Assembly: GCA_002269645.1 (NCBI GenBank)
Contig: NIVC01000276.1
Span: 186,001-250,000 of the forward strand
DNA from: Macrostomum lignano
Lineage: Eukaryota
DNA: 64,000 bases
Direction of reading: 5' to 3'
A program made the position numbers and the translations under genes. The notes below the pieces were generated by a model. That model searched no databases. It saw nothing but the letters and a program-made list of their open reading frames with translations, and was not told the origin of the DNA. Of the stretch, positions 32,778 through 48,391 are shown one piece after another. Positions within the stretch are counted from its first letter, which is position 1. The number at the start of each line of letters is the position of its first letter.

Positions 32778-33626
32778 ATGCTGAGATTCGATAAGTGCGG
32801 AATGCCAGCTGGCCACTGTCTGCTTCTGCTGCAGCTGTTGCCGCTGTCACTGATGGCCGTCGCCGAAGTCAGCGTGTGCCAGCCGGGCATGCGATGGGAC
32901 CCGGGCCAGAACAGGTGCGTCCACTGCACTCAGGCTGAGATTGACTTGGGAGAGTGCGGAGACGGCCTGACTACCCAGCGGGCGGCATCATCAACTGAAG
33001 CTGCGTCTACGGTGTCTGTTTCTACTGAGTCCGATTCGAATTTGTCGTCTTCTCCTAATCTTGCGATTGTCCTACCAATTGTGATACCTGTTGTGCTGAT
33101 TTTGGCTGCTTTCGCCATCATTGCCATCGTTTGCTATTGCAAGCGTCGTTCAACGCGATCTAACAGGCGTCAAGAGCTGGAAGATCAAGAACAGCAGGGT
33201 GATAATACTAAACTACTCAAAGCTGACCAGCCTCGACCGTCTGGTAAACTGCCTGCGGTGCCTGCGGAATCTGCGGAATCTGCGGAATCTGCGAAATCTG
33301 CGGAATCTGCGGAATCTGCGGAATCTGCGGAATCTGCGGAATCTGCGGAATCTGCGGAATCTCAGCAAGGAGTCACAAGGTTTTCTCACAAGAGCCAAGA
33401 ATTACCGCACGGCTTCAGGACAGGCGCGGAGGTCGGAAACGCCACAGGCGAGGAGGATGGAAACGCCGCAGAGATCACTGGTGCGCCCGGCTCGGTGACT
33501 GGCAGCGGCTCTCCTGAAGGCCGAGACGGAGAGGCGAGACTGCAGCTTCTTTCGACTGCTCTGGAAAACCGGGACCGACCCGCTTATGCTGATGGTGATG
33601 AAGGCACGGCTGCGACTGGTACCTAA
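32778..33626 (+). CDS. TNFR-like single-CRD type I membrane protein 1 (chimeric, with an AES repeat in the tail), ~282 aa
   Basis: Signal-like LLLLQLLPLSLMAVA; CQPGMRWDPGQNRCVHC; Ser/Thr stalk; TM LAIVLPIVIPVVLILAAFAIIAIVCY followed by KRR; intronless ORF. The start could be ATG 32778 or 32802. Confidence 0.8.
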   Translation: MLRFDKCGMPAGHCLLLLQLLPLSLMAVAEVSVCQPGMRWDPGQNRCVHCTQAEIDLGECGDGLTTQRAASSTEAASTVSVSTESDSNLSSSPNLAIVLPIVIPVVLILAAFAIIAIVCYCKRRSTRSNRRQELEDQEQQGDNTKLLKADQPRPSGKLPAVPAESAESAESAKSAESAESAESAESAESAESAESQQGVTRFSHKSQELPHGFRTGAEVGNATGEEDGNAAEITGAPGSVTGSGSPEGRDGEARLQLLSTALENRDRPAYADGDEGTAATGT

Positions 33627-34962
33627 GAGTCTGTGCCTTAGGCGTCACACCTAACTTCGCTTAAAGTTGACTGTATTATCCAAGCAATAATCTCCCATAT
33701 TTTTTGTTATGCACTTTCAATCCAAAAACCAAATAATTTGTCCTGATCGGTTATTCATGTTATGTTCATTTCAGAGCATTTTTAGTCAGATAAAGCTTGA
33801 TTTTTTTTACAATTCGGTTTGATTTACTGCAGAACCGACAGCAATCTCGGTGATTTCCCTAACCTAATTTGAAATACATGTATAAGACGAACCTGGCAGA
33901 CAGAAGCCTCTGTACTTTCTTTAAACTTAAACTAAACAAGTTCGAATGCATAAGCTATACTCGTACGATTACTCATGGTGGACTGAAAAAAATCGTTGCG
34001 TTGCGAAATTTATTGGGGAGATTTCATAATTTTTAGAACTAAATTCCCAATTTCTCGCCTTCTGAACTTCTGAATTGTAAACTGCTCTGCAATGGTGTGG
34101 GCGCGGCTTTGCAATGCGAGCCATTTTTCCTCCCGTCAAACTACCAAAAGGGGGACCCCCTGACATTTTTTACTGCGCCGGAACGGAGCAACGCAGGCAC
34201 ACGAAATTCAAGAACACGGGCTAACTTTTTGTTGCGCACCTTCTCAAACAGGAATCAAGTCGCCAGTCCTCAGGACCGTCGAGATATTCAACGATTCTGC
34301 CAGAAGGTCGGATTTTCCACATAAGCGCCAGTGTATTCAATGCACCCCTGTGCGCCAATCAGCCCTGCGCCTCAGTGCAGCCTTGCCAAGCCTCCAAATT
34401 TCATTAGCACGTCAACCGCATGTGTCTGCATCAGCTCTGACTTCGTTGGTCTTCTGAGATCTTCAGCGGGTGGTACCAGGTGACTATGGACTCAAACATT
34501 CCGTCATCAAACGAATGATGTACAACATTTTTGTTTGAATCTTTTAAGCTTACTCACGAGTTTTTTTAAATTAAAAAGCTTACAATGTACGTACATTTCG
34601 TACAACAAAAATATCTGGTCTAAATTAAACTAAATTTTTATCTGTCACTCTACTGACAGTAGAAATTTAAGGAAAATAAACAAAGAAAATAATCTATAAA
34701 AAGTGTCCAGTACATGTACTGAATAGCTAATCTAAAAACATTGTTAGGGCAGTACACAACCATTACCGTTGAGATACACCGCTAATTTCTCTCACTGTAC
34801 TCTGCACTGTGCAGTTCTGAGTACACAGCAATGAGCTCTCTTGTGTGCTCAACTGTGTCACAGCGCTCTCAGATTGAAACACTGTCACTGACCGAAGTTG
34901 AGACGGGTAATGGGTAAAAATAGATTATCAGTCAAGCATTTACTGTACATTGTACCTGGAAC

Positions 34963-34969
34963 TGACTCA
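34963..34969. promoter_or_regulatory. AP-1 consensus TGACTCA ~80 bp upstream of receptor gene 2 (duplicate at 39665-39671)
   Basis: Exact consensus match; function not shown. Confidence 0.35.
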
Positions 34970-35048
34970 TTATTATACTGAGCTCCAGTATGACAAAATT
35001 TGAAAGATTCACAGAGCTAACCTTACAAAAAATTTTCAAGACTTCAAC

Positions 35049-35762
35049 ATGAGTATCTTGTCAGCTCTAATCACATTGCTGCTAGCTGCTCAAGCTTACG
35101 GCAACACCTGCTCAAAGGCTGGCGAGTACTTCGACTCGGGCCAGCAGATGTGCCTCCGCTGCCCGCTGCCTTCATCGGAAATCCAAGTCCACCTGCACTA
35201 CTTGAGCACCTGTCGCAACCATCCAGTCTGCTGCGTTGCCAACTCGACAGGCAAGCCGAGAGGCGCCCCTGACGAGTGGCGTCCAGACGCTACAGCGAGC
35301 TCACCAGCTCAGGCAGCTGGTGAATCAACCGTTTGGATCGTCATCGGTGCGCTCGTGCTTGCTGGTCTTCTGACAGTTCAAATCCTGGCTCTCATTCTGG
35401 TGTACGTGAAGTTTGTCAGAGCCAGGCAGGGAGAAAGGCAGGCCGAAAAGGGCTCATCAGCTTCTGTCCCACCTGATGTCAACACCGACGAAGCAGCGTC
35501 GCCTTGTGATGAAGAGCGTAGATCGTTTCTACATACGAGTTGCCATGGCAACCAACACGATGCAGCAGCCGGCCAGTCAGCTGGAACCGACTCTCCAGCT
35601 TCTCAGCAGACAGGAGAGCGCGAATTTGCGTCAGCGAGTCAGCCTGCAAATCACCATGGAAACGAGCAGCGAGCGAACACAGTTATGAATTCGATTGTGT
35701 ATCAGAAAAATGGGTCAGTTCGTAGATCTGCATATCCTGAGAGTACCTATGACTCAGCTTAA
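35049..35762 (+). CDS. TNFR-like single-CRD type I membrane protein 2 (BCMA/TACI-like CRD), 237 aa
   Basis: Signal peptide MSILSALITLLLAAQAYG; CSKAGEYFDSGQQMCLRC...C.....CC; TM VWIVIGALVLAGLLTVQILALILVYV; tail ending SAYPESTYDSA. Confidence 0.85.
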   Translation: MSILSALITLLLAAQAYGNTCSKAGEYFDSGQQMCLRCPLPSSEIQVHLHYLSTCRNHPVCCVANSTGKPRGAPDEWRPDATASSPAQAAGESTVWIVIGALVLAGLLTVQILALILVYVKFVRARQGERQAEKGSSASVPPDVNTDEAASPCDEERRSFLHTSCHGNQHDAAAGQSAGTDSPASQQTGEREFASASQPANHHGNEQRANTVMNSIVYQKNGSVRRSAYPESTYDSA

Positions 35763-46641: not shown

Positions 46642-47139
46642 TGGCTTTTTTATGTAGTTTATGTTATGCATTATTGGTTTATGTTGTGCTTTATCATACG
46701 AGCGTAATTATTCGGAACTAAATTTGTGAGGCAAAATTCTAGAGTTTTTTGTTTGTTTTATTTTACGACGAGAAATGAACAGTAAAACTAATGAATAAAT
46801 TGTGCAAAGTGAATTCATTCAAAAGGCTGCTTTTTTTATCTATCAGATACTGAAATTCTTTCCGATAAAATGAAATACAGCCAAATTTGCGAGTAACCAA
46901 AGCCTGAGCGGCTTCTGAATCAGAGTTGAAAATTTGAACATGGAACTGACGAAGTACTCATTATAGCAATTACACACCATTACATAGCAAATTTACACAT
47001 ATTGCACACTTGCTAAAAATACATTTCTAAAAATATTGTACATTGTTAGTCGTACAAGTTGGGGCACACCCATAGACTGATAAAGAAAGATAAAATTACG
47101 TACGACCTAAATTGTCTTCCATCACATACAAAGATAATT

Positions 47140-47665
47140 AGATAGATAAATAAATAGATAGATAGATAGATAGATAGATAGATAGATAGATAGATAGATA
47201 GATAAATAGATAGATAGATAGATAGATAGATAGATAGATAGATAGATAGATAGATAGATAGATAGATAGATAGATAGATAGATAGATAGACAGATAGATA
47301 GATAGATAGATAGATAGATAGATAGATAGATAGATAGATAAATAAATATAGATAGATAGATAGATAGATAGATAGATAGATAGATAGATAGATAGATAGA
47401 TAGATAGATAGATAGATAGATAGATAGATAGATAGATAGATAGATAGATAGATAGATAGATAGATAGATAGATAGATAGATAGATAGATAGATAGATAGA
47501 TAGATAGATAGATAGATAGATAGATAGATAGATAGATAGATAGATAGATAGATAGATAGATAGATAGATAGATAGATAGATAGATAGATAGATAGATAGA
47601 TAGATAGATAGATAGATAGATAGATAGATAGATAGATAGATAGATAGATAGATAGATAGATAGGT
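47140..47665. repeat. (GATA)n microsatellite
   Basis: Direct inspection. Confidence 0.98.
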
Positions 47666-47842
47666 ATATATCCTTGATATAAATTATTTTAGGGCGCATT
47701 TGCAGAGTAAGCAACGAGACGTGGCTGCAGCTGCTTATCTCTGTACTGCAGTGGAATTTATTTCGCTCGCTGAGCGAGAGTCCTGCTTAGGCCTAACTAA
47801 GCAGAGCTCATTTAAAAAAGAGAGCAATTCATTGAAATTTTT

Positions 47843-48391
47843 ATGCAGCGCGCGTCGGCAACGAAACTGTCGGTGCTGTGCGCGCTGCTCCTGCTGAACC
47901 TGTGCCTCAGTCCGGCCGGATCGTCCAGCATCCGGGCTTCCCGGCTGTTCAAGAGCAGAGCGTCCGGCTGCCCCCCAGGCAGCTACCTGGCCAGGCCATC
48001 GCTGCTGTCCGTCCTAGCCGAGCCCGAGTGCAGGCCGTGTCCGAGCTCTGAACCGGACAGCGGAAAACCTCCTGGCCGGCTGGACTGGCTCTACAGGCGG
48101 GCCTTCCAGCTGGTGCACCCGGAGTGCGCGGCCGAGGCCAGCAAGAAGAACGCGGAAGGACAGCGGCGCCTCGGCCTGGGCGGGCTCGGCGCTCTGGCGG
48201 CGGGCGTTGCCATGGCCGGAGCTGTACTTTTTGTGGCCTATCAGAAACGACGCCTGACGCGCCGTCGAGAGCGAGACGGCGGCCCGCGGTCTGGACATCC
48301 GCTGGAACCAATCTGTGGTGGAGGACAAGTCCGGGACGCTGGGCCTGACTGGACTGAGTCTGAGATGACAGTTTCTCTAAGCGATTGCTGA
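47843..48391 (+). CDS. TNFR-like type I membrane protein 9 with a classical CRD1-like motif, 182 aa
   Basis: Signal KLSVLCALLLLNLCLSPAGS; CPPGSY...ECRPCP...HPEC; TM LGLGGLGALAAGVAMAGAVLFVAY then QKRR; short tail. Confidence 0.8.
   Translation: MQRASATKLSVLCALLLLNLCLSPAGSSSIRASRLFKSRASGCPPGSYLARPSLLSVLAEPECRPCPSSEPDSGKPPGRLDWLYRRAFQLVHPECAAEASKKNAEGQRRLGLGGLGALAAGVAMAGAVLFVAYQKRRLTRRRERDGGPRSGHPLEPICGGGQVRDAGPDWTESEMTVSLSDC

Follow-up and report, generated by a model that had tools for sequence, protein, structure and literature searches.

A tandem family of seven single-hairpin membrane-protein genes in Macrostomum lignano, possibly encoding minimal receptors of the TNF type

The window analysed here is a stretch of 64,000 nucleotides from the flatworm Macrostomum lignano (assembly GCA_002269645.1, contig NIVC01000276.1, positions 186,001 to 250,000 of the forward strand), and it contains a tandem cluster of small membrane-protein genes between positions 32,778 and 48,391. 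Eight open reading frames (ORFs) of the + strand were confirmed at the ATGs 32778, 35049, 36709, 38226, 39750, 43484, 45994 and 47843, as proposed by an earlier reading made from the letters alone (the sequence-only reading); the last ORF ends at 48391. The eight ORFs are called G1 to G8 in this order, of which G1-G7 form a family and G8 is a neighbour. Our leading interpretation, held tentatively and at somewhat less than an even chance, is that G1-G7 are minimal hairpin receptors working like BAFF-R, BCMA or Grindelwald, possibly for the EDA/BAFF-like tumour necrosis factor (TNF) ligands of the worm.

The family is defined by a motif common to G1-G7 in the alignment, C-x5-6-[YWFL]-D-[PS]-x4-C-[VL]-x-[C/L/T], with C, D and C invariant. 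The pattern C-x5-6-[YWFL]-D-[PS]-x4-C has six matches in the six-frame translation of the window, compared with 0.27 expected from shuffles, and all six are inside the cluster on the + strand. G3 is a seventh carrier, but its motif is interrupted by an intron and was therefore missed in the unspliced scan. The old paralogues are only 15-36% identical, yet the cysteines and the Asp are invariant among them. In G1-G5 a C-x2-C directly follows the hairpin, and the module is extended to six cysteines in G2, G4 and G5; G1 and G3 have four ectodomain cysteines, and G6 and G7 two. A distal tail motif, [PSAV]-x-Y-[AP]-[DGE], lies within the last 7-22 residues in six of the seven genes, and a PLPxxPE..L stretch is common to G6 and G7. 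Judged by these shared features, G1-G7 are true paralogues and the family is real. The sequence-only reading had counted eight members; seven stand as paralogues, and G8 has neither the hairpin nor the tail motif.

Each protein has one strong hydrophobic transmembrane (TM) segment, together with a short Cys-bearing N-terminal part and a serine/threonine (S/T)-rich stalk, and an N-terminal hydrophobic leader is found in all of them except G3. This corresponds to the single-pass type I or type III topology of the TNF receptor (TNFR) superfamily. Because it has no signal peptide, G3 is a putative type III membrane protein. The gene without signal peptide had previously been given as the fourth, an off-by-one error, since it is the third (36709) and the leader of G4 is normal. 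Pfam gave no Death domain match in any of the eight proteins, and the architecture described before (one short Cys module, an S/T stalk, one TM and no death domain) was thus recovered.

The assembly is neopolyploid, and the locus has three homeologous copies, namely the window, L001/L002 and L004. The cluster comes after WDR11 in the window and in L001/L002, and L004 ends before that upstream region; a repeat-rich mucin-like gene lies downstream of the cluster in all three copies, followed by a SacI-domain gene in the window and in L004. The ORFs are kept open in the three loci: seven of them are intact in up to three homeologs, whose divergence is 4-11%. Between homeologs, the ratio of nonsynonymous to synonymous divergence (dN/dS) is 0.35-0.6 for G3, G4, G6 and G7; genes of the G2/G5 type have values of about 0.8-1.2, compared with about 0.05 for the adjacent WDR11 exon at the same dS; the cluster genes evolve approximately 10 times faster. 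Variation among recent copies is lowest in the Cys module, with 8 of 141 positions variable versus 100 of 702 elsewhere (Fisher p=0.004), and these counts mark the hairpin as the most constrained part of the protein. The proposal that the locus diversifies rapidly is therefore borne out by the dN/dS of the genes (0.35-1.2) and not by the Cys module, which is what recent copies conserve best. In the G1 copy of L001 (4474-5509), a frameshift close to the juxtamembrane KRRSTRS region divides the gene into two overlapping ORFs; the copy is otherwise nearly identical to that of the window, and represents either a pseudogene or an assembly error.

All matches of word-indexed protein searches with G2, G7 and G8 were M. 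lignano copies, and when 1.84 billion representatives were searched exhaustively with the family profile, no single-module membrane protein was found outside this species. These searches support the suggestion, already made in the sequence-only reading, that the family is lineage-specific to M. lignano.

If the leading interpretation holds, G1-G7 would be Macrostomum-specific small single-pass cell-surface glycoproteins, six of type I and G3 of type III. Their sole ordered extracellular element is a disulfide-closed beta-hairpin, borne on an S/T-rich stalk that is probably O-glycosylated, and in this interpretation it would serve as the ligand-binding element in the same manner as in BAFF-R, BCMA, Fn14 and Grindelwald. 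In such minimal TNF receptors, one A1-type hairpin inserts between the protomers of the trimeric ligand. The likeliest ligands would be the expanded TNF ligands of the worm that resemble EDA, BAFF, APRIL and TWEAK, and signalling or sorting would occur without a death domain, through the short acidic tail and the distal tyrosine motif x-Y-[AP]-[DGE].

Several features point to TNF receptors. The A1-type first module of TNFRs has the form C1...aromatic...C2-x2-C3, with C1 and C2 closing a beta-hairpin. G1-G5 carry it as C-x12-13-C-x2-C with an aromatic-Asp tip, and in G6 and G7 the hairpin is present and C3 absent. BAFF-R, BCMA and TACI, whose sequences were verified against PDB chains, are likewise small single-pass proteins with an ectodomain of about one disulfide-stapled hairpin plus C-x2-C and no death domain. 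The C-x12-C-x2-C of G1 has the spacing of the first cysteine-rich domain (CRD1) of BCMA and TACI, and the C-x7-C-x2-C core of G3, with its four cysteines, has that of BAFF-R. EYFDS is identical in G2 and BCMA (the BCMA string quoted in the sequence-only reading was correct), and an aromatic-Asp pair is at the hairpin tip both in the family and in the three receptors. BAFF-R, BCMA and TACI lack signal peptides, and G3 resembles them in this respect. In addition, G2 corresponds to UniProt A0A267EV69, whose UniRef name is 'TNFR-Cys domain-containing protein'; we take this name to derive from the PROSITE TNFR-Cys profile (PS50050, rule PRU00206).

Structure-based comparisons point in the same direction without reaching significance. 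In a search with the family profile, BAFF-R ranked second among 177,635 PDB sequences, at a non-significant E=0.23, and PDB sequence searches (phmmer/profile) with G2 and with the family profile gave nothing significant. AlphaFold2 (AF2) models of the G2 and G3 ectodomains were built from 8-row alignments, with an overall predicted local distance difference test (pLDDT) score of 55 and 63, respectively; they are confident for the beta-hairpin only (pLDDT 70-78). In Foldseek searches against PDB, TNFR2 and BCMA made up eight of the nine rows for G2 (E 4-9, probability <=0.14, non-significant), and BAFF-R had rank 1 for G3 (E=2.3, probability 0.41, root-mean-square deviation 0.7 A, 44% identity over 16 columns). 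This search of modelled ectodomains, which had been proposed as a check and was done for G2 and G3, therefore gave a modelled hairpin and TNFR2, BCMA and BAFF-R as first-ranked chains, but every E-value was above 2.

A number of observations weigh against a TNFR identity. The Pfam models TNFR_c6, BCMA-Tall_bind, TACI-CRD2, BaffR-Tall_bind and stn_TNFRSF12A have no match in the full proteins at E<=1 or in the isolated ectodomains at E<=10. The Foldseek searches with G2 and G3 returned no PDB match below E=2 and aligned only 16-24 columns. An hhalign comparison of the family with BCMA/TACI/BAFF-R gave a probability of only 43% (score 21.6, 21 columns), while in a control the BCMA/TACI/BAFF-R alignment matched unrelated bacterial hairpin repeats at 89%. 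The A1-type module is not exclusive to TNFRs, and Sushi-domain hairpins, conotoxin-like peptides and EGFR/insulin-receptor modules were also among the top matches. The exhaustive profile search found, besides the M. lignano copies, approximately 75 multi-repeat proteins with CPxGxxFDPxxxxCV units. Because these bacterial repeats and the Sushi, conotoxin-like and EGFR/insulin-receptor modules also surface, the hairpin is structurally generic. The second module of G2, G4 and G5, C-x16-C-x5-CC, fits no known TNFR module spacing (B2, C2, D2), the reference second modules being C-x3-C-x8-C-x3-C in BCMA, C-x3-C-x6-C-x3-C in TACI and C-x2-C-x8-C-x2-C in Fn14, and AF2 confidence is below 50 in the second half of the G2 module. 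Beyond the hairpin, a single further Cys is present in G1 and G3 and none in G6 and G7, which leaves the latter two with one possible disulfide only. The DxL motif at the hairpin tip is incomplete: the Asp is invariant, but the Leu is replaced by G in G1-G5, S in G6 and H in G7. TRAF2- and TRAF6-type patterns in the tails are sporadic and none is conserved family-wide, a motif scan that is uninformative in itself. Neither the window nor the two homeologous loci contain a TNF ligand gene linked to the cluster, and the high dN/dS is also compatible with weak constraint. Overall, the TNFR assignment of the cluster is weakly supported, a reasonable lead in which the resemblance is too short and unspecific for proof. 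Of the TNFR-like assignment made in the sequence-only reading, the UniRef name of G2 and the non-significant TNFR-first rankings stand, set against the empty Pfam result, the low hhalign probability and the generic hairpin.

The comparison with known receptors shows further differences. Unlike BAFF-R, BCMA and TACI, the family has a long S/T stalk, a tail with a Tyr motif and G, S or H in place of the DxL Leu, G6 and G7 have a single disulfide, and the second module of G2, G4 and G5 departs from the D2 form C-x3-C...C-x3-C. To our knowledge, BAFF-R, BCMA and TACI are restricted to vertebrates, so that any link to them would reflect either ancient A1-module ancestry or convergence. The Drosophila receptors Grindelwald and Wengen, like the family, come from an invertebrate, are of type I with a single CRD and lack a death domain; their ligand Eiger is in the EDA-like group, as are the Macrostomum ligands by best human match. 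No Grindelwald chain was returned by the PDB profile search or by Foldseek.

In vertebrates, the EDA/BAFF/APRIL/TWEAK group of ligands is served by the small receptors XEDAR, BAFF-R, BCMA, TACI and Fn14. According to Bertevello et al. 2020 (PMC7519573), Macrostomum has several TNF ligands, with EDA-A2, BAFF, APRIL and TWEAK as best human matches, and each flatworm species has one NGFR-like TNFR, which in M. lignano is BOX15_Mlig018038g1. The G2 protein accessions (window and L001 copies) are absent from the files of that study. BOX15_Mlig018038g1 is from the same species and has the generic C-P-x-G ... C-x2-C-P strings seen in the cluster proteins but, unlike them, has four classical CRDs and a death domain (PMC7519573). 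The cluster proteins have no significant similarity to it, the best being G8 with E=0.3 (composition-corrected, in an 8-protein database). A preprint (10.1101/2024.07.27.603686) counts six Eiger-like, 16 Wengen-like and one Grindelwald-like homologues in M. lignano. The view that the animal has few described TNFRs, which agrees with the single NGFR-like receptor of PMC7519573, is consequently dated.

The strongest rival, which we rank second but consider nearly as likely, is that the cluster is an orphan family of mucin-like membrane proteins whose hairpin arose by convergence or de novo and binds a non-TNF partner. Such a partner could be another protein of the surface, a component of matrix or glycans, or a molecule taking part in the fast-evolving biology of reproduction or of the epidermis in the worm, and the TNFR resemblance would be the generic look of any C-x2-G-x2-aromatic-D-x5-C-V hairpin. 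The hairpin-repeat proteins from the exhaustive search favour this explanation. They are largely bacterial or metagenomic, the single named source being a metagenome-assembled genome of Bdellovibrionales, and Pfam assigns their repeats to CBM_14, matching only its C-terminal half (the last ~25 positions of the model, about 28-53). They are the best sequence match to the family hairpin, with an hhalign probability of 97% that involves some circularity, the family profile having been used to select the repeats, and units such as CGPGQHWDSGQNRCV are nearly identical to CQPGMRWDPGQNRCV of G1. On the other hand, they occur in long tandem arrays in secreted proteins, without C-x2-C after the hairpin and without the stalk, TM and tail, and their relationship to the family hairpin is almost certainly convergent. 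The same hairpin thus recurs in repeat proteins of bacterial and metagenomic origin and within CBM_14, in its C-terminal half, and BCMA/TACI/BAFF-R match these unrelated repeats better than they match the flatworm family. The orphan explanation is also consistent with the lack of a match to any curated TNFR model, with tails that carry a Tyr motif in place of a death domain or conserved TRAF motifs, with the absence of homologues outside M. lignano in the searches made here and with the high dN/dS. It accounts less readily for the 'TNFR-Cys' name of G2, for the TNFR-family chains that head the lists of both independent Foldseek searches and come close to the top when PDB is searched with the profile, and for the C-x2-C that follows the hairpin in G1-G5 as in TNFR A1 modules. 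Moreover, the only small membrane proteins that we know to be built around one such hairpin are the minimal TNFRs.

As a side observation, single-disulfide hairpin repeats with the pattern C-P-x-G-x-x-[FYW]-D-x5-C-V occur widely among secreted proteins of bacteria and metagenomes, often with Pro-rich linkers, and may be an undescribed repeat family. One of the hairpin-repeat proteins has a BCMA-Tall_bind match below threshold.

A more specific version of the receptor interpretation is that the cluster encodes true minimal TNF receptors of BAFF-R/BCMA/Fn14 grade, some of them pared to a single-disulfide hairpin, which expanded alongside the EDA/BAFF/APRIL-like ligands. We consider this unlikely, though far from negligible.

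It is improbable that the ORFs are transcribed but largely functionless, that is, young and neutrally drifting duplicates or pseudogenes in a repeat-rich, recombining neopolyploid region. A dN/dS of about 1 for the G2/G5 type would fit such drift, as would the frameshift of G1 in one homeolog, the absence of G8 from one homeolog and a GenBank annotation that calls minisatellite ORFs genes and has no model for G1 and G3. Drift would not be expected, however, to leave seven ORFs open in up to three homeologs at 4-11% divergence, a dN/dS of 0.35-0.6 for G3, G4, G6 and G7, a Cys module significantly less variable than the rest (p=0.004), or invariant cysteines and Asp across paralogues that share 15-36% identity.

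The remaining explanation, that the hairpin is a peritrophin-A (CBM_14) remnant and makes the proteins binders of chitin, or of other glycans, on the surface of the cell, is very improbable: the placing by Pfam of the profile-found repeat proteins in CBM_14 (positions about 28-53) speaks for it, but PF01607 (six-Cys, ~53 residues) has no match in any of the eight proteins even at E<=10, the N-terminal half with three of the six cysteines is absent and the hairpin directly follows the signal peptide, the bacterial repeats cover only half of the model so that the label itself is doubtful, and no CBM_14 structure is among the Foldseek matches. A CBM_14 origin of the hairpin was rejected accordingly, as only half of the domain is present.

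If G1-G7 are ligand-binding minimal TNFRs, the seven genes would add unrecognised receptors for the TNF ligands of M. lignano, and the picture of one NGFR-like receptor per species would fall far short of the richness of TNF signalling in flatworms. One-hairpin TNF receptors would then be no speciality of vertebrates and arthropods but either ancestral or repeatedly evolved. M. lignano is a regeneration model amenable to transgenesis and RNA interference, and the cluster would make it possible to test how the smallest TNFR architecture originates and then diversifies by keeping the hairpin, exchanging tails and losing cysteines. If they are not TNFRs, the cluster would be an ordinary lineage-specific membrane-protein family, and an example of how a short disulfide hairpin and an automatic 'TNFR-Cys' name can suggest a famous family without real evidence. 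The locus becomes notable only if ligand binding is shown.

Self-comparison of the cluster reveals how it was assembled. A G1-type gene received a copy of the block 38648-40525, which consists of the 3' half of G4, a spacer and G5. The copying yielded G2 and a chimeric G1, which has its own ectodomain, TM and SAE repeats and the tail of G4, and it stranded a G1 remnant at 35837-36178. The duplication of the tail is seen as the similarity of 33380-33922 to 38648-39194, and the remnant as the match of 33128-33362 to 35842-36076 (94%). G5 is a recent duplicate of G2 (87% protein identity), with the block 39212-40525 matching 34528-35820. The leader and Cys module of G4 are of the G2 type (88% DNA identity to G2 and G5), and its stalk, TM and tail are unrelated. 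Taken together, the matching blocks indicate that the cluster has grown by tandem duplication and unequal recombination, with tail swaps and chimeric genes.

Minisatellite arrays with periods of 4-51 bp are unusually dense between the cluster genes, in the G3 intron and in coding tails (the SAE repeats of G1). They are found at 31371-32269, 35976-36130, 37062-37435, 40533-41575, 42236-42871 and 47139-47663, with many further arrays at 2.6-8.4 kb and 25.7-29.6 kb of the window, and they may drive the unequal recombination of the cluster. The GenBank 'genes' at L004 1-739, L004 6089-6967 and window 42107-42883 are ORFs through such arrays (RNLRNM… and MTHSSPALL… repeats), which is a caution on the gene models of this assembly.

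Regarding the individual genes, all on the + strand, G1 (32778..33626; 282 aa) is a single ORF in which a signal peptide is followed by the 4-Cys module CQPGMRWDPGQNRCVHC...C, the S/T stalk, the TM (101-119) and a tail with in-frame SAE repeats and then the fused G4-type tail with its PAYAD end. G2 (35049..35817) has an unspliced ORF of 237 aa (35049-35762), to which BOX15_Mlig007536g1 (contig NIVC01000276.1, GCA_002269645.1) is 100% identical, and a GenBank model with exons 35049-35713 and 35781-35817 that gives 233 aa; its order is signal peptide, 6-Cys module CSKAGEYFDSGQQMCLRCP...C...CC, stalk, TM and an acidic tail with SAYPE. The G1-type remnant (35837..36178) retains a juxtamembrane KRRSTRSNRRQE stretch, SAE repeats and the original tail end, without an ectodomain. 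G3 (36709..37886; 125 aa, exons 36709-36745 and 37546-37886) consists of the 4-Cys module CSGRPGRCYDPGQNLCVRC, one TM and a 39-aa tail. Its intron (36746-37545) is canonical GT-AG and contains a 16-bp minisatellite, the 12-codon exon 1 and the donor are kept in both other homeologous loci, and a TATA-like box lies ~40 nt upstream. G4 (38226..38918; 230 aa, single ORF) combines the G2-type signal peptide and 6-Cys module with its own poly-Ser stalk, TM and tail (PVYAD), and its L001 copy is annotated as BOX15_Mlig031201g2. G5 (39750..40454; 234 aa) is a single ORF with a GenBank model.

The two genes with a single possible disulfide are G6 and G7. G6 (43484..44234; 204 aa) has a GenBank model with exons 43484-43934 (alternative donor 43901) and 44071-44234, and encodes a signal peptide, the 2-Cys hairpin CPVNQRFDPSISMC, a stalk, a TM and a tail with ...PLPPVPEEELLQD...RPEYAGLGS. 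G7 (45994..46641; 215 aa, single ORF) is annotated in all three homeologous copies and has a signal peptide, the 2-Cys hairpin CPENTKLDPHIGQC, a stalk, a TM and a tail with PLPTPPEQQL and AAYAG...STVDNEEIN. In UniProt, the G6 variants A0A1I8IDP2 and A0A1I8I5Q6 are named 'DAG1 domain-containing protein'. Pfam searches of the full proteins and isolated ectodomains gave only weak TM/stalk artefacts (TMEM154, DAG1), and the sole DAG1 similarity found was a sub-threshold match of G1 (E=0.0018) across its stalk and TM, so that the DAG1 name is probably artefactual. The UniRef name of G7 and G8 is 'Uncharacterized'.

The statement that most genes of the cluster are intronless was accurate: besides G3, only G2 and G6 have introns, in both cases 3' introns of the GenBank models, and the other five of the eight genes are single ORFs. 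On the window contig, GenBank has models of G2, G5, G6 and G7; those of G4 and G8 are on L001 and L004, respectively, and there is none for G1 and G3. As the annotation was built from RNA-seq transcripts, the six genes with models are expressed. A search of papers and supplements for expression data found no mention of the locus tags Mlig007536, Mlig031201, Mlig030932 and Mlig027853. Two genes of L001, BOX15_Mlig031201g1 (the G2 copy) and BOX15_Mlig031201g2 (the G4 copy), have one common transcript-cluster prefix. Since polycistronic, trans-spliced transcription units are frequent in M. lignano, the common prefix Mlig031201 hints that neighbouring cluster genes may be co-transcribed.

G8 (47843..48391; 182 aa) is a single ORF for a type I membrane protein. 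It has a CPPGSY...CRPCP string, which the sequence-only reading had taken for a classical CRD1, and lacks the two family motifs. Its word-indexed search returned only its own homeologous copy, and nothing significant was found among PDB sequences (phmmer/profile search). G8 was rejected as a family member, having no shared motif and no homologues, and the CRD1 assignment was also rejected, there being no significant TNFR match and only E=0.3 to the canonical TNFR of M. lignano after composition correction (8-protein database). By these comparisons, G8 is an unrelated orphan membrane-protein gene. Almost all of it is carried by a GC-rich segment of ~700 bp (47672-48372), which is absent from the homeolog L001 (~18839-18842) and present in L004 with the annotated 182-aa gene BOX15_Mlig027853g1. 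The segment is a presence/absence polymorphism between subgenomes, located directly after a (TAGA)n array.

In the interval between G6 and G7, a stretch of ~1.1 kb (44560-45698) has no counterpart in L001. A 147-aa ORF on the - strand (45040-45483; …LLYNAETWTLT…) resembles the C-terminal part of a non-LTR retrotransposon reverse transcriptase and has no Pfam match at E<=0.001.

Directly downstream of the cluster, the + strand ORF 49941-51545 (534 aa) has a signal peptide and ~14 copies of the 17-aa repeat AAPKGGSGHTKSLISDG, which derive from a minisatellite with a 51-bp unit. It also has an S/T-rich region, and its C-terminal TM precedes a juxtamembrane stretch rich in Cys. Because of its signal peptide, repeats, S/T-rich region and TM, the product looks like a mucin-like membrane protein. 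A weak Pfam PLDc match, produced by the HxK of the repeat, is probably spurious, and the repeats have diverged in the homeologous copies (~72% DNA identity). The other flanking genes are an SLC3A2-like heavy chain with SLC3A2_N and alpha-amylase domains (16439-20519, + strand), WDR11 (22000-31348, + strand), a SacI-homology (Syja_N) phosphatase (52071-56200, - strand) and a GDPD-family phosphodiesterase (59811-61705, - strand). The G+C content of the SLC3A2-like, WDR11 and SacI gene stretches is ~58-67%, versus 40-48% in the cluster, and that of the GDPD region is ~47-48%.

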